DNA from: Mobula birostris
Lineage: Eukaryota
Length of the DNA: 64,000 nt
Assembly: GCF_030028105.1 (NCBI RefSeq)
Contig: NC_092375.1
Location: 32,339,130 to 32,403,129 of the forward strand
Reading direction: 5' to 3'
The position numbers and the translations under genes were made by a program. Positions 37,831-64,000 of the stretch are shown here, one piece after another. Position 1 is the first letter of the stretch, and each line of letters begins with the position of its first letter. The notes under the pieces are model-generated. The model was given only the letters and a program-made list of their open reading frames with translations. It had not been told where the DNA came from and made no database searches.

Positions 37831-38977
37831 GCAAGCAGTAAAATGATGTTTGTTCATTTTACAACTCAATTAAATGAAAATGACTAATTGATAAATGCTC
37901 CTTTTTCAAAACATTGAATCTCTCACATAGTCTGCAAAATAAAATATTTAAGTACAACATTTCCAAAATTGGATCTGTAATCATTAGTTTTTCCAATCTC
38001 CACACAATTATTGTAGTGATGTCAATACTTATTTTATTTGGAAAACTCTTAAAAATATCACATCACTCATTTACAATAACAGACGATTCTCCCCTCCCCC
38101 CAATTAGATACATTGCATTTCAGTGTTTCAATAAGAATATCAACTTACAGTATTACATTGGCTCAGAACTAGGTAAACTTACACATATGAAATCCATAGA
38201 TAATTTAAAGAAAATAGTATTTTTATACACATATGAAAAATATTCCCAACTCTGGCCAAAATGAATAACTTTTTTGGTGTATTACCAGAAAAACTACATT
38301 AAAACAATACTTAGTCAAAGGTTAAAGTGCAATTGTCATTATTAGATTACTAATATTGCCATTACACCAAACTTGTACTATACATTCTACTTGCATGTTC
38401 TAATTTACAAATTGTCATTTTCTTCCACAAAAAGGGAGTTAAATAAGATTAACAAAATTATTTTCAAATACAATCTGCATTTTAAAAATCACTATTTAAT
38501 ACTGTCAAATTTCCATTGAAAAAGTCCATTCAGCAATATCCAAGAAGATGAGTACTAAAATTCACACAAACCTCCACAAGATCCTACTGTCATGACAAAA
38601 CTGCAATTTCCATTTTGAGGTTAAAAATCATAAGCTATTCTTACTTATATTTTATAGACAGTGAACAACTTGAATTAGAGGACACAGTCTACCTGCTCCA
38701 GTCTTAACTTTCCAAAACAAGTAAAAAAATTTCCTCCAGAAAATCCATCATTTGTTCAAACTCCACAGAAATCTCCCATTAATTCCAATTTTCCATATTG
38801 TTGTGTTGTATCCATTCAAAGGAAAAGTAGAAATGCTCTGATCTGGACATAGCATTCTGAGCAAACAGATCTGAGAGTAAATCTAAACTTTCTGCAACAA
38901 ACCAAAATGGAATGGAGCCACCATTTTCCTCTCAAGCCATAGGATTTTCTGACTATGGACAAGCTATATGTCACATT

Positions 38978-39098
38978 TCAAGCATTTAGGTAAGATGGAT
39001 TATGTTCTGAAGAACTGCATTCCAGGTCTACAATCATACTATCCAATTCTTCAAGGCAGGGTTTGATCAGTTTGTTTTGCGTATATGCAATTTTCAGT
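38978..39098 (-). CDS. Cut8/Sts1-like gene last coding exon (R-LKIAYTQNKLIKPCLEELDSMIVDLECSSSEHNPSYLNA*)
   Basis: Acceptor tttctgttacAG with matching phase 2, and TGA at 38980-38978. It is followed by unique AT-rich 3'UTR-like sequence with candidate polyA signals ATTAAA (38500-38495) and AATAAA (38038-38033). Confidence 0.82.
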
Positions 39099-39829
39099 CT
39101 GTAACAGAAAATAGAATTGTTAGATAACAGTTTAAAGTTGTCACTTGCTTTTATTACATTACATAAATTACAATTGTGTTTTTCTTTCCATTACTCAGCT
39201 TCTCCACTGCTAGGGTTAAGCTGACAATGTTATCAACACCAGATCTTAGCCCTAAATGGTCATTGATGAGATAGTTCTTTAGTAAACTCAGACAACAAAA
39301 CAATCGTAACTAGATTACTTTTACAAATAAATGCACGTACAAAGATACATAAACAAGGGTATTATGCAATTTTAAGTACATATTCCCACCTGTTCCCTCC
39401 CAGTCCTGCCCAGTAAGTTACTACATTTATTATCATTGTTTCACTAACTTTTGGATGATTTTGCTACAACATATGTGGGGACAAGGTGGTTCTCTTTTTT
39501 CCTCCCCAGTTGCTTTACTCCGAATTGTGATTATAGCTGTGAAGGCATTTAGTATCCATATGTAAAATGATTAAATTATGTATCCATAATAAAAGGGAAT
39601 ATGGATTGTTTTATTTTATTTACATTTTTAATTAACAAGCTCCTTTGATCTCAAGAAGAAAAACAATTCTATTTTCATCTAATTCAGTATTACAAGGTTA
39701 TTCCCAAAAGGACTAATTGGAGGAACTCTGGAAGAAAAACTGGAGTAGGAAATAACATGACCAATGTACACAAAAGCAAGGAAGTTGAAAACTGAAGTCT
39801 GGGCTTTACATCAAAGACAAACAACATTA

Positions 39830-40323
39830 CACTCAGTGGCACTTTATTAGGTAAACCTGCATATCTGCTTGTTAATGCAATTATCTAATCAGTGGCAGCA
39901 ACTCAGTGGATAAAAGCATGCAGGCGCGGTCAAGCGATTCATTTGTTTCTCAGACTTAACATCAGAATGAAGGAAAGTGATCTAAATGACTTTGATCATG
40001 GAATGATTGTTGGTGCCAGATGGGGAGGTTTAAGTATCTCAGAAACTGCTGATGTTCTGGGATTTTCACACTCAACAGTTTCTGGAGTTTACAGAAAATG
40101 GTATGAAAAAGAAAAAACATTAAGTGAGGGGCAGTTCTTTGGGCGAAAACGCCATGTTTATGAGAGAGGTCTCAGGAGAATGGCCACTGTACAAGCTGAC
40201 AGGAAGGCGACAGTAGCTCAAATAACCATATATTACAGCAGAGGTGTGCAGAACACCACAAAAATACACTCAGCGGTTACTTTGTCTGGTGCAGGAGGTA
40301 CCTAATAAAGTGGCCACAGAGTG
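39830..40323 (+). mobile_element. Tc1-like non-autonomous DNA transposon (transposase HTH remnant) in the last intron of the Cut8-like gene
   Basis: TIRs CACTCAGTGGC-ACTTTATTAGGTA / TACCTAATAAAGTGGCCACAGAGTG with TA on the left, and the ORF DFDHGMIVGARWGGLSISETADVLGFSHSTVS. Confidence 0.88.
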
Positions 40324-40840
40324 CATATGTAGGTTAGTTTAAATATTTGTTATGCAGTTCATGTCACACTGTTCATTTACAATATCAAGTCTTATGGATG
40401 AAAATGATAAATTTGTTCACTTTCAGTAGAGTTTAATTTTACAAAAACTTTTAATCCATAAATGAAAATGAGTATAGAAAAGCTCTAGTAGAGAAATTAG
40501 CCCTAAAACAATAAATTATGAGGATGTGTATTTAAACAAAGTTAAAATTTTCTCAACAATTGAAAATGTAAGACTGATCCAATGTGAATATTGACAATCT
40601 GAAAATCTATGGGTTATTTGTAATATAATTATTTCATTTCATGGAAAAGTCACAATAACCCTTTAATAAAAAATACAGATTCTTTGCACAGTTGGCCATC
40701 TGGGACTGTGACCAACATTAATAACAATGTGGTTTTCACATTTTATAGTATTTTGGATTGATTAAATGCATGGCCAATTCAATACCCTTTTCCAAAAATT
40801 AATTCCATTCTTTCTCAAATATCTATGTTGAGACATTTAC

Positions 40841-41067
40841 CTTTTCCTAAGTTGTTTATATTTCTCTAGCTCCAGAGAGCTTCTTTGTAAGGCAGTTGTG
40901 CCCTGAGCTGCTAAAACTGTAAAACACTGTTGTGTACTTTCATTATGGAAGCTATTATCCCAGTGAGGAAGTTCACTGGTATACTGCCACGCAATCAGCA
41001 TGTAGTTTAATGAAGTTTCCCAGCATCCTGCTTGCAATAATATCTTCCCTTGTTCCAAGCATGTTCT
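40841..41067 (-). CDS. Cut8/Sts1-like gene coding exon 6 (RTCLEQGKILLQAGCWETSLNYMLIAWQYTSELPHWDNSFHNESTQQCFTVLAAQGTTALQRSSLELEKYKQLRK)
   Basis: Acceptor tatctttgcAG, donor AAG|GTAAAT, 227 nt, phase 0-2. Contains an LPxWD...H motif. Confidence 0.9.
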
Positions 41068-41534
41068 CTGCAAAGATACAAAAATGTAAAACACTTATGT
41101 TGATTTGAATAAATTTCATATAACTCACCAGAACTTGACTGCACCTTTCTGTGAAGGAAAAGATGCCCAAAGCTTAAATCAGTAGCTTTTGAACCTAATA
41201 AAATAGGTTCCCTATTTTTCTACCATTTGCTTTACTCAGAATTAAGACCATAATGGTGAAAGCATTATATTCTACGTGTAAAATGATTAAACTATATATA
41301 CACACACACATAATAAAAAGAAATATCGATTGTTTCACTTCATTTACATTTTTAACTAACAAAGCCTCTTCACCATGTAACAAGAAGAAAAATAATTATA
41401 CTTGCACCGAACACTCGGTCAAACCAGTAAGCGGAAGATGCATGTTAGGCATTAAAGTTAGAGTGAACCCTCCTCCACCATTTAATTTTTAATTTAATCT
41501 TTAATTTTATTTCTGCATCTGGCCCATTAAAAGA

Positions 41535-42420
41535 GAACCAGATTCAGGTTTAATATCACTGGCATATGTCAAGAAATTTGTCTTGTGATGGCAAATAATA
41601 ATAATAAAACTATAAATTACAATAAGTGTATGTTAAAAAATTAAATTAGTAGCGCAAAATGAGAAAAAAAAAGAGGGGTTCATTGTCCATTCAGAAATCT
41701 GATAGTAGAGGGGAAGAAGCTGTCCTTAAAAATTGGGTGTTTGTCTTCAGGCTCCTGTACCTCCTATTTGATGTTAGCAATGGGAAAGCGGCATGTCCTA
41801 TATGACGGGGATCATTAATGATGGGTGCCACCTTTTGAAGGTGTCCTTGATAACGTGCAGAGGCCAGTGTCCATGAAGGAGCAGCCTGTGTTTACAACTT
41901 TCTGCAGTTTTTTTAAAAAATGATCCTGTGCAGTGACCTTTCCATAATCAGACAGTGATGCAACCAGTTAAAATGCTCACCGGAGTACACCTGTAGAAAT
42001 TCACGAAAGACTTTGGTGACAGACTAGGTCTCCCCAAACTTCTAATGAAATATAGCCAGTGTCATGCTTTCTTTGTAATTACATCAAAATGTTGGATCCA
42101 GGATAGATCTTCAAACTTGAAACTGCTCACCATTTCCACTGCTGATCCCTCCATCAGAGGGAGATACAGAAGCTCAGTTTTTGGGGCTTCTTGATTAGAA
42201 TTGAGGGTATAATGCTTTGAACACTGAGGTATAGCCAATAACCAGCAGCCTGATGGAGATGTTGCTATTGTCCAGGTGATCCAAGGACAAGTGGAGAGCC
42301 AGTGAAATGGGATTCACTGCAGACCGGTTATGATAGACAAGTTGCAGTGGGTCCAGGTCCTTGCTAAGGCAGGAGTTGATTCTGGCCATGACCAACCTCT
42401 CAAAGCACTTCATCACAGTA
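41535..42420 (-). mobile_element. Rex1/Babar-type LINE fragments
   Basis: MMKCFERLVMARINSCLSKDLDPLQL, and a 3' end similar to 37410-37830. Confidence 0.75.
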
Positions 42421-42686
42421 GCATTACAGATTTAACCAAAATCAAAACAGTGCCTATAAGATGGCCTACATAAGTATTATTAAATATTTAATTAAACAGG
42501 CAGAAAATGAAAATATTTCATAAGTGAATATAAAAATAAAACAAGGATTACCAGCATTTGTAAGCTTATGTATATAGGAACTGATGGTGTCCACCCAATT
42601 AAGTATAAACGAGTATCCCTAGAAATATAAAGGCAGGAAATTTGAAGGGAAGCAATTACAGTCCACCTTGGTTGGCGAATACTAAC

Positions 42687-42848
42687 CTTGAAAACCTGAA
42701 GATGATTACGTGCTTTACGATAGCAGTATGCATCTCTGTTGGAACCCAAGCGCCATCGTGGTATAGAACGAAAAACATTGCTTTTGATTATCTCCAGCTG
42801 TTTCTGAGCACATTTCAAGATGAATGATGGAAGAACCAATTTCACGTC
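42687..42848 (-). CDS. Cut8/Sts1-like gene coding exon 5 (DVKLVLPSFILKCAQKQLEIIKSNVFRSIPRWRLGSNRDAYCYRKARNHLQVFK)
   Basis: Acceptor cctgaaacAG, donor AAG|GTTAGT, 162 nt, phase 0-0. Lies within ORF 42492..42902. Confidence 0.88.
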
Positions 42849-42991
42849 CTGTTTCAGGAGGAAATAATTGGGTGTCATATAATTCTGAATCCAACAGCTC
42901 ATGTTACAGTTCTTACTCCAGTTAAAAAATAAAAAAATTTATAAAAATGTTGCTGTGTTTTAAGTTAATGCCACACAGCATGAGTACATAC

Positions 42992-43119
42992 CTCATCATC
43001 AATTGCTGGATATTGGCGCAACAGAGTCTGCACTAGCTGAGATGATAGCAAATCTTTTAGTTTGACTTGTAAATTTCCACCTGGCTTAAAATGTAGTCGC
43101 TGTTTCTTGAAAGGTGATT
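42992..43119 (-). CDS. Cut8/Sts1-like gene coding exon 4 (E-SPFKKQRLHFKPGGNLQVKLKDLLSSQLVQTLLRQYPAIDDE)
   Basis: Acceptor cacttttcAG, donor GAG|GTATGT, 128 nt, phase 1-0. It is absent from the ORF track and was read manually. Confidence 0.85.
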
Positions 43120-43298
43120 CTGAAAAGTGAAGATTTAAAATTTTGTTATCTCTTTCATGGAAATATTTCTGTTGAGTGATACATTTCAGAATGTGTCTTG
43201 GGTGTGCATATTTGTTTTTTCTGTAAATGATGCGCTAGAAGAAATTACCATAAAATAGGTACCATTCACTCAAAATAAATGGCATCAGGTACACACAC

Positions 43299-43415
43299 CT
43301 TTCTCACTGCTATTTTCCGAAGGATTTTTATCACTGATGAAAGTTAATGAACACATTCTTCTTCTAGCTCCAAACTTTCTTTTCGTGAGCGACGAGACTT
43401 CAGAAATATCTTGTG
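43299..43415 (-). CDS. Cut8/Sts1-like gene coding exon 3 (A-QDISEVSSLTKRKFGARRRMCSLTFISDKNPSENSSEK)
   Basis: Acceptor tttgttttccAG, donor AAG|GTGTGT, 117 nt, phase 1-1. Contains the basic cluster KRKFGARRR. Confidence 0.8.
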
Positions 43416-43689
43416 CTGGAAAACAAAAACAAACAAAATCAAAAGATGGATAATTGCCAATAGCTGAAACCAGCATATTAATCTGCATATGCCTGTTGTA
43501 ATACGTTCAGTTGCTTTATTACAAGATCCAGACAAAACAATAAAGATCAGAAAGGCTAACAAAAGGCATTATATTATATGCTTATACATTTCCAATCAGT
43601 ATCAAGAGAATTTTTGTGGTAATTCATTTTATGTTTTTGTTAGATGTCACTATACATTGTCCAAATAGCCGTTTACATTAATCCTCCAC

Positions 43690-43940
43690 TGAATGTATTT
43701 GATTCACCCCACATTCTCCATCAACATTCTACTCACTCATTGACAAAGTACGGGCAATTCACCACAGACCATTAATCTACCCATCTGCATATCTTTGATA
43801 TGTAGGTGGAAATAAAAACACTCAGAAGAAACCCACAAAGTCATTCAGAGAACATGGGAGACTACAAAGACAGCATGAGACCAGGATTGAATCCAAGCCG
43901 TTGGAGCTGTAAGACAACAGCTCCGCTAGCTGCACCACAC
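43690..43940 (-). mobile_element. Degenerate V-SINE
   Basis: 'tctttgatatgtaggtggaaa..gaagaaacccac..ccaggattgaatcc' pattern, as at 28903. Confidence 0.55.
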
Positions 43941-44579
43941 GCGTAAATCTATCAACTTGCAAACAATACACATTTGCAGTTTCATAAGGATCATCCATAA
44001 ATGATTAACAACAAATTTAATTAACAGATGGACATTGAACACTTGGCCCAAATATTTCCTACCATAATTTTGCAAAAACTTGGGGAACAACTAATGTCAT
44101 TTTCAAAATCTCAGTGGTTTCTATAACATTGGGACCACTTACAGTGTAGTAACATACATAATGCAAATACCTCAGAGATTTGAAGGCAAGGAATTTTTTT
44201 TAGAGCCATTATATCAAATAAGTGCAATTGGATCCTAAAAAACTGTCACCCTTGCCTTCTCTTTTAATTGCTCTAGCTAGATTAAGCACAAATTATGATG
44301 AAGCAATATAGATTAATTTCTGCCTGTTGAATTTCCCATCTCAGAGGAAGATAGAGCAACAGATTGCCTCTGTATTTCTGATAATAGGTAGTGTTTTTAT
44401 TGCAAGTAACTTAACTAAAATGATTGCACAAGGACCAGTTTACACAGCCTCCTCAATAACGCCTGAGGCCTTGTCCTAATGGGAGAACTGCCCCATAAAC
44501 TAGTAAAGAGTAGGTGAAAATTTGCAATTTATTTATTTATTTATTTTTACACATTGTTGTAAAATACAAAGGCTAGAAA

Positions 44580-45300
44580 CCTCACAACCTCAGGGATGTG
44601 CACTTAGCCCCCTGCTCTACTCAATTTACACCTATGACTGTGTGGCTAAGTACAGCCGCAACACCACATACAAGTTTGCTGATGACACCACTGTTGTGGG
44701 CTGTAACAAAGATGGTGATGAATCAGCATACAGGAGGGAGATTACCCGGAGATTCGGCATGTCATCAAAAACCTTAGTGAACTTAGATGTGCGGTGGAAA
44801 GTGTGTTGACTGGTTGCATTAAGGCCTGGTATGCGAACACCAATGCCTTTGAGGACAAAGTCCTACAAAAGGTAGAAGATTCGGCCCAGTACATCACGGG
44901 TAAAACCCTCCCAACCATTGAGCACATCTACATGAAACGTTGCCATAGAAAAGCAACATCCATCATCAAAGATCCTCACCAACAAGGAATGCTCTTTTCT
45001 CGCTGCTGCCATCAGGCAGAAGGTACAGGTGCCTCAGAACTTGCACCACCAGGTTCAAGAACGTTTATTACTCCTCAACCGTCAGGCTCTTGAACAAAAG
45101 GTGACAACTACACTTATTTAAGGACTCTTACCGTATTATTTCATGCTCTTTATTTATATATTCAATTGTACCGTTTGTTGTCCATTGATCCTGTCTACAG
45201 TTACTGTTCTATAGATTTGCTAAGCATGCCCGCAGAAAAAAATCTCAGGGTTGTACGTGGTGACATGTACGTACTGATAATAAATTTTACTTCGATCTTT
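44580..45300 (+). mobile_element. Rex1/Babar-type LINE fragment
   Basis: PQGCALSPLLYSIYTYDC..KFADDTTVVG, ESVLTGCIKAWY, and a 3' end 'tgataataaattttact'. Confidence 0.8.
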
Positions 45301-46159
45301 GAAGCAGTAATTTAACTCCACGATCTTGTGAATGGCGGAGCAGAATTACACTAAGTGAAAGTGGTTGATACATGAACACCTTCAGCTTATTAAGAGCAGA
45401 ACCCGTCACCTTACTGAGAAAGCTTACACAATAATACAAAACACAAAGCAACTGACCCATTTCCAGGAGTTCCCCAGCACTACAGAAGCAAGTTTTCAGA
45501 CAGTTCAGTTCATTCTATATGATGAAACAGCCAAGCACTAGCCAAAAAAACACACACACACCCAAGATAACCAACCAAGACTACTGTTGACCTATTACCC
45601 TGATGACATACTCGCTGCAGCATTGAACACCAGTGCTTTAGAACCATCCACACAACAACTGGGGAACTGTGTACAGTAAAGATCTTATTTAAGGAAGCAT
45701 ATTAAAGCGTTAGAAGATCAGATAAGGGTTACTATGCCAAGACATGAAATGTGCATGTTGTCTTGCGGAGAAGGGGCAGACAAGCAGGACTCCGATCTGC
45801 TGGTGTGTTAGAAGTATGAAAAGAATCTTGAATGAAACCCAAGAAACCTTGACTTCCTTGTAAGGAAAAGTTGGATCATTTCTTGATAGCTGGGGACATA
45901 CCAGCTTACTGCAGGTAGGTAAAAACACACGATCAAGATTATGAGATCACCCATGGCCTTATAAATGGCAAACTGTGACCAAGTGACCTACTCAAACTAT
46001 TAATATGTTTGTACATTGACCTTCTGAGTAAAATCTGTATCTCATGAAACCGCGCCCCCCAAACAAAAAAGAAATAGTGCATTGCCTTTCATTTAGATGA
46101 ATGGGATGACAACTATTGCACTAATGATCACACACACAGAAACCTGATACATATTCAAC

Positions 46160-47425
46160 TACTGTCGAGCCTTACGAGACTGATTGAATTTTTTGAGGAT
46201 GTGACTAAACACATTGATGAAGGTAGAGCAGCAGGTGTAGTGTATATGAATTTCAGCAAGGCATTTGACAAAGTACCCCATGCAAGGCTTATTAAGAAAG
46301 TAAGGATGCATGGGATCCAAGGAGACATTGTTTTGTGGATCCAGAACTGGCTTGCCCACAGAAGGCAAAGAGTGGTTGAAGACTGGTTATATTCCGCATG
46401 GAGGTCAGTGACCAGTGGTGTGCCTCAGGGATCTGTTCGGGGACCCTTACTCTTTGTGTTTTTTATAAATGACCTGGATGAGGAAGTGGAGGGATGGGTT
46501 AGTAAATTTGCTGATGACACTAAGGTTGGAGGTGTTGTGAGTAGTGTGGAGGGCTGTCAGAGGTTACAGCAGGACATTGATAGAATACAAAACTGGGCTG
46601 AGAAGTGGCAGATGGAGTGCAACCCAGGTAAGTGTGAGGCAGTTCACTTTGGTAGGTGAAATATGGTGGCAGAATATAGTATTAATGGTAAGACTCTTGG
46701 CAGTGTGGAGGATCAGAGGGATCTTGGGGTCCGAGTCCATAAGACACTCAAAGCTGCTGCGCAGGTTGACTCTGTGCTTAAGGAAGCATAGGGTGCATTG
46801 GCCTTCATCAATCGTGGGACTGAGTTGAGGAGCCAAAAGGTAATGTTGCAGCCATATAGGACCTTGGTCAGACCCCACTTGGAGTACTGTGCTTAGTTCT
46901 GGTCGCCTCGCTATAGGAAGGAGGTAGAAACTATAGAAAGTGTGCAGAGGAGATTTACAAGGATGTTGCCTGGATTGGGGAGCATGCCTTATGAGAATAG
47001 GATGAGTGAACTCAGCCTTTTTTCCTTGGAGCGACAGAGGATGAGAGGTGATCTGATAGAGGTGTACAAGATAATGAAAGGCATTGATTGTGCGGATAGT
47101 CAAAGACTTTTTCTCAGGGCTGAAATGGCTAGCACGAGGGGCACAATTTTAAGGTGCTTGGAAGTAGGTATAGAGGAGATGTCAGGGGTAAGTTTTTTTT
47201 TTAATGCAGAGAGTGGTGAGTGCGTGGAATGGGCTACTGGCAATGGTGGTGGAGGCAGATACGATATGGTCTTTTAAGAGACTCCTGGACAGGTACATGG
47301 AGCTCAGAAAAATAGAGGGCTATGGGTAACCCTAGGTAATTTCTCAGGTAAGGACATGTTTGGCACAGCTTTGTGGGCCAAAGGGCCTGTATTGTTCTGT
47401 AGGTTTCTATGTCCTATGTTTCTAA
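46160..47425 (+). mobile_element. CR1 LINE 3' portion (same subfamily as 3960 and 20416), ending ~30 bp from the exon 2 donor of the Cut8-like gene
   Basis: FSKAFDKVPH, GVPQGSV and KFADDTKV motifs; tail ttctatgtcctatgtttcta. Confidence 0.93.
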
Positions 47426-47452
47426 CATTGAGATCTTGAACCAGACAATCAC

Positions 47453-47572
47453 CTGTTGGGTCATTCTCTCTTCTCAGAAAAGACGTTGGAGGAAGATTGG
47501 CATGAAGTGCTGTTAACCCCATTTGTGATCTTGTAGAGTTCAAAATTTCTTCGTAAGACCTGCGAAGATGGA
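47453..47572 (-). CDS. Cut8/Sts1-like gene coding exon 2 (V-HLRRSYEEILNSTRSQMGLTALHANLPPTSFLRRENDPT)
   Basis: Acceptor tttttccctctcAG, donor CAG|GTGATT, 120 nt, phase 1-1, open in frame with exon 1. Confidence 0.75.
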
Positions 47573-49621
47573 CTGAGAGGGAAAAACAATTAAAAACATA
47601 ATTAATGTTGTGACTTGTTTATTATTTTCCTCCTATCATTTCAAAAAGCAACAAGTGCTCGAGGCAGCTAACCAAACCTCCAGGCACTCCTGATCTGCTG
47701 AAAGCGTTTGGTCTTGAATGATATAGAAAAACACCCATTTAAAATACATAGATGTAAACTCTTCTTCTTTCCACCGTAGAAGAATAAGTGCGTGCACATC
47801 GCTAGTTATAGAACCATAGAGTCAGACAGCATAGAAACAGGCCCCTCTGACTAACTTGTTCACACTGTGTTGCCCAGTGAGCTAATCACATTTGCTCAAG
47901 GTTGGCCTTAGCCCTCAAAACCTCTCCTACCAACTCTAATTAGCAACATTTAAAAACCAGTCAGATAATGTGCTTGCCTCAACCACTATTTCTGGCTGCA
48001 AAGGGAGGGTTGGGCATGTGGCCGGCAACCACGTCCCACAAAAACCTAGAACCCCAGAAACGCCAACAGCAGCTCCAATGACCTCATCCCTGAGAAAAGA
48101 ATGATGTGCCAAGAAGGGCTACATTTGGAGACAACTTGAAAGACTGGCCCTAGATAGAGGACTCAGTTGAGACACTGTTGGCAGCCTATGCCCCAGTAGG
48201 GGTGATGGGCTTAAGAATTCCAAATGTGAACCAACCTTTGCATTAAGCAGCTTCCCCTGATGTTGCTGCCTTAAACCCATTCCTTCTTGTTTTTAGCACA
48301 CCACCTCTCTGGAAAAATAGGAGCTTTCTTTCACCCTGTCTAAGTCTCTTGTGAGCTTATACACCTTCATTAGGACATCTCTCAGTCCAGGGAATAAAGT
48401 CCTAATTGACGAAACAGGGATGAAAATAAAAGTGTACAAAATGTAAAAGACCTCATCAAGAGATTATCAACTCTGGGGGAGAAGAAGTCAAAACTGAAAA
48501 ATATCTTTCCGTACTAGTGTCAAATTTTATTGGAACAGATAGATGTAGATGGAGAAACTGGAATTTTTTTCTTCTTCTTACCGATTCGTTAAGAATTAAA
48601 TCATTAAACAAAGGCAGAATATTTCAGATGGTGAAGAAATTGAATGCCAAGCTGCAGCAGGGAAGTTACACCGGCGGGAAGATAGAAGTAAGCAGCATTA
48701 CGCCACAAAGATACGATGAACCCCCCTCCCCCATTGAATTTTGCTTATTGCTGGAAGTACAGTTAATAAACCCTTAGTAGGTTGTGCATCGAAATATAGG
48801 GTGCCAAAGTCAAAAATGCACTATTAATTTATTTTTTTTAAAAAAAGGAAAATAATGTAAAGGAAAACGAGAAGTGGCCAACAGAGGTCTCTCGGTCTGT
48901 TCAAATGGCCAGGCTTTAAAAGTTTAGGGAACCCAACCACGTAGCATTCGAGCTTAATGTAGAAATGATACAGTGCATCTCCTTTTAACCCTTATCTTAC
49001 ATCTTCTTTGCATCTATAATCGGTCAATCACTATTAACAAGGATCACCATTACCAATGTTTGTGTCTGTACACTTTAAAAGCGTTATCGTTAACCCTTAT
49101 AATAATGTATATTTAAGTTACAATAGCATCCAAAACGCAATAATTGTAAGATCAATATTGTATTTAAATAAGCACACCCATTAATTGTTGGTTCACGTTT
49201 GGCGCGTCCCGCGATTTCCATTGCTATGATCAACATAATCAAATTATTTTAGCTAACAAATTAACTCTATATATTTATATTATATATCTAGACCACATCT
49301 ATAATATGCTAATTTAAAATGTTAAGCATCATATTTTTGGCAAATGTGCAGGATGGAAATTGCTTTCTTGTCTACCCGCCAATATTGCAAAGAAACTGCT
49401 ATTTTAAAAAAATGTAATTGATTTTTTTGAGAGAAACGCTATTAAACTAATTGATTGACAATTTAATTGAACCGGTGTAATATTGAAAATCTATTACCAT
49501 ACTTTCAACAATACCGTATTTTAAACTAGTGAATGAGTTCTCCCCTTCCCTCCCCCATCGCCTCGTCTCAGTTGAGCGCCTTATTTTTTTCCGCGTCTAT
49601 TTAAACATGGTTTATACTCAC

Positions 49622-49685
49622 CAGCAATCTTAGGCTGAGGGTTTGGAATTTCCACCAGAACTTGCCTTAGGTTTTCGGGAGCCAT
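49622..49685 (-). CDS. Cut8/Sts1-like gene coding exon 1 (MAPENLRQVLVEIPNPQPKIA; D-box RQVLVEIPN)
   Basis: ATG at 49685-49683, strong donor CTG|GTGAGT, phase 1. An upstream acceptor (ttcgattttAG at 49697-49696) implies a non-coding first exon. Confidence 0.75.
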
Positions 49686-49929
49686 TAATATACTCCTAAA
49701 ATCGAAATAAGTGAGTGTTTAAGAGACCTTACTTACTGGGAATTAAAAAAGGAAAGATGCCTAATGAAAGCCTGGTCTTTTTCCTCACAGTTTTTCCTGA
49801 GTAATGCAAACTAAGTTGATGCAAATTTTCTCTTCATAAATTACAGTTTATAGAATTTATTCCTCTTTTCCCCCTCCCGCTCTACCCACTTCTTGCCTTC
49901 CACTACACTGAATGATGGACTTCTCACGA

Positions 49930-50070
49930 TTTACCAAACCTTTCCAATGTAACAAAGTGAAAATTGCCGCGCGGGCGGAGCTTCCTGAACTTCATCCAAT
50001 AAGATCATCGCACAAAGGTAGAGGAAACATTCACTGCACACTCATCAGTGGTTTTTGACCGGAACTGCAA
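49930..50070 (-). promoter_or_regulatory. Probable promoter / non-coding first exon of the Cut8-like gene
   Basis: CCAAT at 49944 and 49996, E2F-like TTGCCGCGC (49964-49972), GC box GGGCGG (49973-49978), ETS cores (CTTCC 49981, CCGGAA 50059), and candidate minus-strand donors after 49940 or 49935. Confidence 0.5.
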
Positions 50071-62920: not shown

Positions 62921-64000
62921 TCAACACACATCAAAGTTGCTGGTGAACGCAGCAGGCCAGGCAGCATCTCTAGGAGAGGTGCAGTCGACGTTTCAGGCTG
63001 AGACCCTTCGTCAGGACTAACTGAAGGAAGAGTGAGTAAGGGATTTGAAAGTTGGAGGGGGAGGGGGAGATCCAAAATGATAGGAGAAGACAGGAGGGGG
63101 AGGGATAGAGCCAAGATCTGGACAGGTGATTGGCAAAAGGGGATACGAGAGGATCATGGGACAGGAGGTCTGGGAAGAAAGACAAGGGGGGGGGACCCAG
63201 AGGAAGGGCAAGAGGTATATTCAGAGGGACAGAGGGAGAAAAAGGAGAGTGAGAGAAAGAATGTGTGCATGAAAATGAGTAACAGATGGGATACGAGGGG
63301 GAGGTGGGGCCTTAGCGGAAGTTAGAGAAGTCGATGTTCATGCCATCAGGTTGGAGGCTACCCAGACGGAATATAAGGTGTTGTTCCTCCAACCTGAGTG
63401 TGGCTTCATCTTTACAGTAGAGGAGGCCGTGGATAGACATGTCAGAATGGGAATGGGATGTGGAATTAAAATGTGTGGCCACTGGGAGATCCTGCTTTCT
63501 CTGGCGGATAGAGCGTAGATGTTCAGCAAAGCGGTCTCCCAGTCTGCGTCGGGTCTCGCCAATATATAAAAGGCCACATCAGGAGCACCGGATGCAGTAT
63601 ATCACCCCAGCCGACTCACAGGTAAAGTGTTGCCTCACCTGGAAGGACTGTTTGGGGCTCTGAATGGTGGTAAGGGAGGAAGTGTAAGGGCATGTGTAGC
63701 ACTTGTTCCGCTTACAAGGATAAGTGCCAGGAGGGAGATCAGTGGGGAGGGATGGGGGGGGAACGAATGGACAAGGGAGTTGCGTGGGGAGCGATCCCTG
63801 CGGAATGCAGAGGGGGGGGGGAGGGAAAGATGTGCTTAGTGGTGGGATCCCGTTGGAGGTGGCGGAAGTTACGGAGAATAATATGTTGGACCCGGAGGCT
63901 GGTGGGGTGGGAGGTGAGGACCAGGGGAACCCTATTCCAAGTGGGGTGGCGGGAGTATGGAGTGAGAGCAGATGTACGTGAAATGGGGGAGATGTGTTTA
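62921..64000 (-). mobile_element. Penelope-like retroelement (GIY-YIG endonuclease end and terminal repeat), continuing past the window edge
   Basis: The minus strand at ~63630-63500 reads TFTCESAGVIYCIRCS*CGLLYIGETRRRLGDRFAEHLRSIR, followed by a pyrimidine-rich 3' region and 'gatgctgcctggcctgctg'. Confidence 0.88.

Follow-up and report, generated by a model that had tools for sequence, protein, structure and literature searches.

The closest described systems to the gene reported here are two yeast adaptors: the nuclear proteasome tether Cut8 of S. pombe, which is marked for destruction via N-terminal lysines by Rhp6/Ubr1, and Sts1 of S. cerevisiae. As described in the available part of PMC10808114, Sts1 is a short-lived protein whose proteasomal degradation takes place in the nucleus; its N-terminus contains a two-part nuclear localization signal (NLS) that binds karyopherin-alpha, and this is followed by a three-helix region and then by a six-helix bundle, which suffices for binding the 26S proteasome. 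The accessible text of a 2026 paper (PMC12979645) states that vertebrates have no homologue of the yeast adaptor, that of a 2023 paper (PMC10520889) gives the fruit-fly protein as the sole known homologue, and two further reviews assign proteasome import to Sts1 in yeast and to AKIRIN2 in mammals. We analyzed a stretch of 64,000 nucleotides of the genome of the ray Mobula birostris (GCF_030028105.1, contig NC_092375.1, positions 32,339,130 to 32,403,129), hereafter named the window, for which a first-pass annotation made from the letters alone had proposed a gene resembling Cut8/Sts1. We find that the window contains a gene of a Mobula-type ray whose seven exons are intact, transcribed and correctly spliced, and that this gene almost certainly encodes a 312-residue member of the Cut8/Sts1 family (PF08559).

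Gene Structure and Splicing

The gene is located on the minus strand of the window, between positions 49685 and 38978. Its exon borders were read from the sequence and then fixed by script, which resulted in the following seven exons:

Exon 1, 49685-49622, minus strand: 64 nt, with the ATG at 49685 and a phase 1 end ahead of GTGAGT
Exon 2, 47572-47453, minus strand: 120 nt, phase 1 to phase 1, 40 codons (VHLRRSYEE...ENDPT)
Exon 3, 43415-43299, minus strand: 117 nt, linker, containing basic cluster 1
Exon 4, 43119-42992, minus strand: 128 nt, basic cluster 2 and the beginning of the three-helix region (LKDLLSSQLVQTLLRQYPAIDDE)
Exon 5, 42848-42687, minus strand: 162 nt, long helix and the motif RSIPRWRLGSNRDAYCYRKARNHL
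Exon 6, 41067-40841, minus strand: 227 nt, core of the six-helix bundle (SLNYMLIAWQYTSELPHWDNSFHNE...)
Exon 7, 39098-38978, minus strand: 121 nt, final 39 codons and the stop codon TGA at 38980-38978

Together, the exons comprise 939 nt, corresponding to 312 codons plus the stop codon. All six introns have GT..AG borders with a pyrimidine run before each AG, and the phases match (1, 1, 1, 0, 0, 2). The seven exons and the product of 312 residues given in the first-pass annotation were therefore exact, and the three peptides that it quoted are located in exons 4, 5 and 6.

The closest natural orthologue is the "uncharacterized protein LOC134347912" of M. hypostoma (P0161), which is also 312 aa long and 98% identical; by reading, six of its 312 residues differ from the ray gene model. 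When this protein was used in a tblastn search of the 64-kb window, its residues 1-312 fell on seven collinear blocks at the exons listed above, residues 1-20 matched exon 1 at 100% identity, and no second copy of the gene was found. Exon 2, which sits within the open stretch 47618-47307, corresponds to residues 22-61 of both the M. hypostoma protein and a thorny skate protein. Two other exon arrangements were considered and dropped. A six-exon model (819 nt, 272 aa) is in frame, but it is 40 residues short, and it was the skate protein that revealed exon 2. A 20-nt exon at ~41160-41130, which has a good acceptor and is followed by GTGAGT, breaks the frame, is present in none of the contigs described below and has no orthologue residues. 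The intron sequence past the donor of exon 2 (47423-47452, minus strand) continues in frame and encodes GDCLVQDLNV, which resembles the DDCFVQNLNV found inside the longer shark proteins (323-328 aa) and the equivalent sequence of the chimaera. Rays seem to use an earlier exon 2 donor and to have kept the former exon tail as intron.

A search of public sequencing runs identified six runs containing the gene; they come from two studies, and their shares of the sampled words range from 0.11 to 0.23. Four of these (X1, X2, X3 and X6; two studies) were aligned over positions 38500-43500 of the window. That these runs originate from RNA is a guess; we read them as cDNA because their contigs are without introns and unique intron DNA is uncovered, the depth being 0 in the unique-sequence intron bins. 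Single contigs of X1 (2125 letters), X2 (1632 letters) and X3 (2123 letters) match the blocks 38500-39098, 40841-41067, 42687-42847, 42991-43119 and 43299-43418 at consecutive record positions, and they skip the four introns of this region precisely. The contig of X6 is shorter and crosses two junctions. The X1 and X2 contigs show no mismatches with the window, and those of X3 and X6 show a few, in keeping with a close relative. Thus, of the six junctions predicted in the first-pass annotation, four (exons 3-4, 4-5, 5-6 and 6-7) are crossed by RNA-derived contigs, and the other two (exons 1-2 and 2-3) are predicted on the basis of homology and record lengths.

Membership of the Cut8/Sts1 Family

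We screened six stop-free pieces around exons 1 and 3 to 7 (exon 2 was left out) one by one against Pfam. The exon 6 piece matched PF08559 (Cut8) with an E-value of 1.1e-11 and 45.2 bits, against a cut-off of 26.2 (profile positions 131-204), and the exon 5 piece matched the same family with an E-value of 9.4e-5 and 22.6 bits (profile positions 79-135), collinear with the exon 6 match. The pieces of exons 1, 3, 4 and 7 gave no Cut8 match in Pfam when taken singly. The tests at full length were run on the M. hypostoma LOC134347912 protein and not on the joined model from the window. This protein matches PF08559 with 84.5 bits and an E-value of 1.1e-23 over its residues 102-293, covering positions 37-238 of the 241 in the profile, and the match places exons 4 and 7 within the Cut8 domain.

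Exon 6 alone was also compared with 1.84 billion representative proteins, which gave 132 matches at E<=0.001. The best of these is the thorny skate protein mentioned above, a 316-aa "uncharacterized protein" with 80% identity. Four long exon 6 matches that were candidates for fusion or ZSWIM-type relatives turned out to be bacterial repeat proteins without a Cut8 domain, that is, false positives. With the thorny skate protein as query, 33 relatives were obtained, all 33 of which are tagged PF08559. We then used an alignment of 29 animal relatives, in which PF08559 is the sole Pfam family in each of the 29 members. The profile of these 29 relatives found one match at E<=1 among the PDB sequences, S. 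pombe Cut8 (3q5w), with an E-value of 2.5e-13, and the profile aligns to residues 25-200 of Cut8, including the region before the bundle (residues 25-71).

Predicted Fold

An AlphaFold2 model of the LOC134347912 protein was built on the alignment of the 29 relatives and has a mean predicted local distance difference test score (pLDDT) of 69.5. This score is mostly below 50 in the first 115 residues, with low-pLDDT stretches at 37-92 and 94-115, and it reaches 86-98 in the helices between residues 142 and 302. Helices of the three-helix region are predicted at residues 117-121, 126-136 and 142-171. A Foldseek search with the model gave three matches at E<=0.001, all of them Cut8 chains of 3Q5X and 3Q5W. 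Superposition with VIA-align gave a Z-score of 17.0 and a root-mean-square deviation (rmsd) of 2.3 Å over 139 residues (model residues 152-295 against 72-216 of 3q5w_A), and the next entry scored 11.5. As modelled, the predicted six-helix bundle is the Cut8 bundle.

The homology to Cut8/Sts1 had originally been judged by eye, with the expectation that profile searches would return PF08559 and that structure searches would return Cut8. Both came about: the per-exon Pfam matches, the Pfam match of the orthologue, the PDB profile search and the fold comparison, in which Cut8 chains took the top three places, all agree.

Domain Organization and Conservation

The protein consists of an N-terminal motif resembling a destruction box (D-box), a disordered linker of ~100 residues with two basic clusters, the three-helix region and the six-helix bundle. 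The short motifs are located as follows:

D-box-like motif RQVLVEIPN (residues 7-15), 49641-49667, minus strand: read from the sequence, putative function
Basic cluster 1 KRKFGARRR (residues 73-81), 43357-43383, minus strand: in exon 3, putative NLS
Basic cluster 2 KKQRLHFK (residues 105-112), 43085-43108, minus strand: in exon 4, directly before the first helix

The consensus of the destruction box is RxxLxxxxN. The pattern R..L..[ILVM] occurs within the first 30 residues of 55 of the 57 full-length-like vertebrate members, versus 7.5% in shuffles of the N-terminus, and within the first 40 residues of 22 of the 56 full-length-like invertebrate members, versus 4.9% in shuffles; the rows counted are related proteins, so that the counts are not independent. 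The D-box-like motif is therefore present and conserved, and it would constitute a predicted N-terminal degron that may give the protein a short half-life.

Both basic clusters lie within or beside the low-pLDDT stretches 37-92 and 94-115. At the position of cluster 2, at least four lysines or arginines are present in 12 of the 13 non-teleost jawed fishes, in the lamprey and in all nine invertebrate rows. A basic NLS is thus predicted to be present in a disordered stretch on the N-terminal side of the helices. The cluster before helix 1, which has the form KK[QR]R[LI], has been retained in lineages ranging from sea anemones to sturgeon and is eroded in the six teleost rows. The proteins of teleosts, which at about 255-270 aa are shorter as well, do not have the region corresponding to ray exon 3. 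In this ray, the KKQRL sequence is preceded by an SP dipeptide, which is found in only some rays; a site of the cyclin-dependent kinase type is therefore not conserved here.

The identities to the skate protein are 91, 74, 59, 77, 71, 79 and 67% for exons 1 to 7, respectively, and the same exon-wise pattern was obtained with tblastn for the chimaera, in which exon 3 has no match. For exon 6, the identity is 73% to the chimaera and 44% to the bowfin. By these values, the exon with the D-box-like motif and the helical exons are constrained and the linker is free to vary. Between the close relative represented by X3 and X6 and the window, there are six differences in the 755 nt of coding exons 3 to 7. 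Two of these are silent and two are replacements, and the remaining two are probably replacements, as judged from the M. hypostoma protein. In comparison, the 478 letters of the 3' untranslated region (UTR) covered by X3 contain six substitutions and one insertion.

Distribution and Descent

The species named here come from match lists of 33, 42 and 98 rows and from 30 of the 132 exon 6 matches. Orthologues among these named matches are present in the sea lamprey, in skates, sawfish, stingray, devil ray and electric ray, in sharks of at least four orders and in the elephant fish. In ray-finned fishes, they are found in the non-teleosts sturgeon, paddlefish, gar and bowfin, and in many teleosts, including eels, herrings, carps, salmonids, pike, cod relatives, stickleback, ricefish, killifishes, flatfishes and others. 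Invertebrate members include those of the deuterostomes amphioxus, acorn worm and brittle star, and those of a brachiopod, annelids, a priapulid, mosquitoes, Rhagoletis fruit flies, ticks, corals and sea anemones. No tetrapod, lungfish or coelacanth is present among the named matches, which is an absence of matches and not a proof of loss. For the remaining exon 6 matches, the nearest labelled relative is a fish at an identity of at least 52%, the lamprey or an invertebrate.

A maximum likelihood tree of 34 family members supports the vertebrates as a group (100/96), the lamprey outside the jawed fishes (98/97), and the cartilaginous fishes (100/99), the ray-finned fishes (100/99) and the rays (100/100); branches within the cartilaginous fishes are short. 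The gene tree mirrors the species tree, and we therefore conclude that there is one orthologue that has been inherited vertically in vertebrates. If the absence from tetrapods is real, the gene was lost on the lobe-finned or tetrapod stem. The product is 312-316 aa long in five ray lineages and 323-328 aa long in sharks and the chimaera.

None of the listed vertebrate relatives is named Cut8 or Sts1 by its source, though all of them are tagged PF08559; some invertebrate rows (Lingula, Acropora) do carry the name Cut8/Sts1. The suspicion that databases may already list the gene as uncharacterized was correct, since RefSeq and UniProt contain such entries with the PF08559 tag. With this tag on well over a hundred fish protein clusters, the gene is less hidden than the title of the first-pass annotation suggested. 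Danio rerio is not named among the 98 fish clusters obtained with a query from a goldfish relative, in which at least ten carp-family species are named; the zebrafish gene may be unannotated, may be in an unnamed row or may have been lost. The member of the tick Rhipicephalus sanguineus has the RefSeq name "ESCRT-I complex subunit tsg101", which looks like a misnomer; UniRef names its relatives "Proteasome".

Proposed Function and Alternative Explanations

By homology with the yeast proteins, we consider it on balance probable that the protein bears an NLS, is controlled through a D-box and serves nuclear proteasomes as an adaptor or tether. If it behaves like Sts1 and Cut8, its six-helix bundle would bind the 26S proteasome and its three-helix region would make a homodimer. 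The basic clusters would recruit importin-alpha/beta, by which the proteasome would be carried into or held in the nucleus. The disordered N-terminus would give the adaptor a short lifetime, and in animals the RxxLxxI motif may hand its turnover to the anaphase-promoting complex/cyclosome (APC/C). In that case, the level of the adaptor would be coupled to mitotic exit, the point at which the nucleus has to be supplied with proteasomes again.

Several points weigh against this proposal. The function in vertebrates is extrapolated from that of yeast homologues, and the family appears to be dispensable in tetrapods, where AKIRIN2 does the job according to the available part of PMC12979645. None of the six teleost rows has four or more lysines or arginines at the position of cluster 2, and given this loss, the import function may not be general. 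The three-helix region was modelled with middling confidence, with block-mean pLDDT values of 52-88 for residues 121-160. Finally, the coding differences between the close rays are too few to show purifying selection.

The most substantial alternative is that we are dealing with a true Cut8 family protein that has another job in animals, for instance as a cell-cycle-controlled nuclear factor or scaffold, and that AKIRIN2 imports the proteasomes of fishes. We regard this as a real possibility, if one somewhat short of even. It is in line with the low sequence identity of 16-20% that the structural alignment with S. pombe Cut8 shows, with the teleost members that are without a conserved basic cluster, and with the D-box-like N-terminus, which is specific to animals and, to our knowledge, is no described feature of Sts1 or Cut8. 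A loss in tetrapods without obvious consequence would also suit a non-core role, and the literature, in the portions available, names a homologue of the fruit fly and no other animal one. However, the best-conserved part of the ray protein is the six-helix bundle, which is the proteasome-binding part of Sts1 (PMC10808114, available text), and the modules follow each other in the order in which they are described for Sts1: disordered N-terminus, basic cluster, three helices and six helices. These two points favour the adaptor function over another job.

The other two explanations concern the nature of the gene itself. That the gene is decaying or has no function, or is a relic which is still transcribed and has kept an intact appearance, might be suspected from the ~4 replacements against two silent changes between two Mobula-type rays (two of the six differences being assigned by inference) and from introns loaded with reverse-transcriptase fragments, but we consider it very unlikely, because the frame is open over seven exons, no splice site is damaged and four of the six junctions are seen in use. 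Moreover, the product length is kept across the ray lineages and across sharks and the chimaera, the exon encoding the bundle core is conserved as far as the chimaera and the bowfin, and the gene tree agrees with the species phylogeny, its branches within the cartilaginous fishes being short. That the protein is a generic helical or 14-3-3-like protein, and its match to Cut8 a coincidence at the level of the fold, has next to no probability. Indeed, from rank 6 (E ~0.03) onwards the Foldseek list is made up of 14-3-3 chains, which have Z-scores of 8.5-9.2 in VIA-align, where helical bundles often reach such scores by chance. However, these scores are far below those of Cut8 (Z 17.0, rmsd 2.3 Å), none of the 29 members has a 14-3-3 match in Pfam, PF08559 being the sole family in all of them, and Cut8 is the sole PDB sequence found at E<=1. 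Judged by sequence and predicted fold, and as far as these can decide, a 14-3-3-like identity is refuted.

Returning to the proposed adaptor function, a wider scenario can be formulated, which we put forward as tentative and, taken as a whole, rather doubtful. Jawless, cartilaginous and ray-finned fishes would run the ancestral Cut8/Sts1 type and the unrelated AKIRIN2 in parallel, with the Cut8 type of animals being, by virtue of its conserved N-terminal destruction box, an APC/C substrate that gates the restocking of nuclear proteasomes after mitosis, and the lobe-finned/tetrapod stem would have lost the Cut8 type once AKIRIN2 sufficed.

Transcript Ends and Genomic Surroundings

Outside the coding exons, the transcript and its putative promoter are delimited as follows:

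3' UTR, 38014-38977, minus strand: 38500-38977 covered by contigs, the remainder deduced from record lengths
5' UTR and likely promoter, 49686-50000, minus strand: from record lengths and sequence, with a putative promoter role

The exon 7 contigs extend from 39098 past the stop codon, and the records continue beyond 38500 by 472 (X1) and 486 (X3) letters. On the basis of these record lengths, the 3' end would lie near 38028-38014, and an AATAAA sequence is present at 38038-38033, just ahead of it. At the 5' end, the records exceed what exons 1 and 2 need by 190-236 letters, which would place the transcript start near 49875-49921. Two inverted CCAAT boxes (ATTGG), noticed by eye at 50000-49996 and 49948-49944, are 52 nt apart with a GC-rich sequence between them, and both are located upstream of the putative transcript start. 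Paired inverted CCAAT boxes with a GC-rich spacer are common in cell-cycle genes, and the arrangement would, by eye, fit a D-box protein.

The first two coding exons of TBC1D23 are located downstream of the Cut8-like gene on the same (minus) strand, at ~15119-14991 and 6177-6061, which is ~23 kb beyond the putative 3' end of the gene. These exons gave no Pfam match; in a search of PDB sequences they matched the human TBC1D23 chain 6jl7_A with E-values of 6.9e-14 and 2.7e-9, confirming the neighbour that had been named at the outset. The introns of the Cut8-like gene contain reverse-transcriptase fragments on the plus strand at 46201-46656 (E 5.9e-21) and 44522-44806 (E 4.9e-7) and a weak helix-turn-helix fragment at 39892-40302. 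In each of the four runs, transposon fragments at 39836-40336 and 41506-42507, in introns 5 and 6, were covered thousands of times by contigs, from which it follows that the repeat families concerned are abundant in the transcript assemblies. Further away, the open stretch 63315-63578 (minus strand) has a weak match to a GIY-YIG nuclease, with an E-value of 0.0067 and below the cut-off, and looks like a fragment of a Penelope-type retroelement.

Significance

The gene adds a new and still unnamed member to a known family; it has been predicted in many fish genomes, yet the field has overlooked it. Full-text searches, whose scope did not extend to the homologue survey of Takeda et al. 2011, found no paper on a vertebrate Cut8/Sts1 orthologue. 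The first-pass annotation described the family as thought to be missing from mammals and as lost in some later lineages. The belief that it is missing is in print for vertebrates as a whole; the putative loss in later lineages is read from the lack of a tetrapod among the named matches. With orthologues from lamprey to stickleback and ricefish, the printed statement that there is no vertebrate homologue is true at most for tetrapods. Moreover, the available text of PMC10897318 describes a Xenopus protein, Zswim4, with a cut8/STS1 domain after its SWIM domain, which promotes the degradation of nuclear Smad1. If this domain claim is true, a distant Cut8-like domain survives in tetrapods within another protein.

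The correction is modest, as RefSeq and UniProt already list the proteins under their Pfam tag and what is missing is a name and a paper. Nevertheless, fishes provide a natural system in which to ask whether Cut8/Sts1 and AKIRIN2 are redundant, are split by tissue or cell-cycle stage, or are specialized for the 26S and the 20S proteasome. Should tetrapods truly be without the gene, its loss can be placed on the lobe-finned/tetrapod stem. The analysis also raises a concrete idea, namely that of an animal adaptor under the control of APC/C.

Comparison with Known Systems

The M. hypostoma LOC134347912 gene is the orthologue of the gene described here, with the same length of 312 aa and the same seven blocks; as an entry, it is the product of automatic annotation in a different species. 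The invertebrate proteins named "tethering factor for nuclear proteasome STS1/cut8" (Lingula, Acropora) are 41-47% identical to the ray protein in exon 6, and the basic cluster is shared by the invertebrate members, many of which also have the RxxLxxI N-terminus. They differ in that many of them contain a TPPKTPK-type stretch, [DE]TPPKTP[KR] with two TP sites; the lamprey has TPPCSS, and jawed fishes differ at this position.

S. pombe Cut8 (3Q5W/3Q5X) belongs to the same Pfam family and has a superposable six-helix bundle. In contrast to Cut8, to which it is 16-20% identical, the ray protein has a D-box-like N-terminus and a longer disordered linker. With S. cerevisiae Sts1, the karyopherin adaptor for 26S import, the ray protein shares the module layout, as set against the available part of the published description and not by alignment; the proposed D-box control differs from the situation in Sts1, which is degraded without ubiquitin. 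AKIRIN2, the import adaptor of vertebrates, resembles the Cut8-like protein on paper, since the available parts of PMC12979645 and PMC8961600 describe a cargo-binding part, a flexible linker, an NLS, a dimer and a short half-life. However, AKIRIN2 is unrelated in sequence and fold, and it binds the alpha ring of the 20S proteasome and not the 19S lid (PMC12979645 and PMC8961600, available text).

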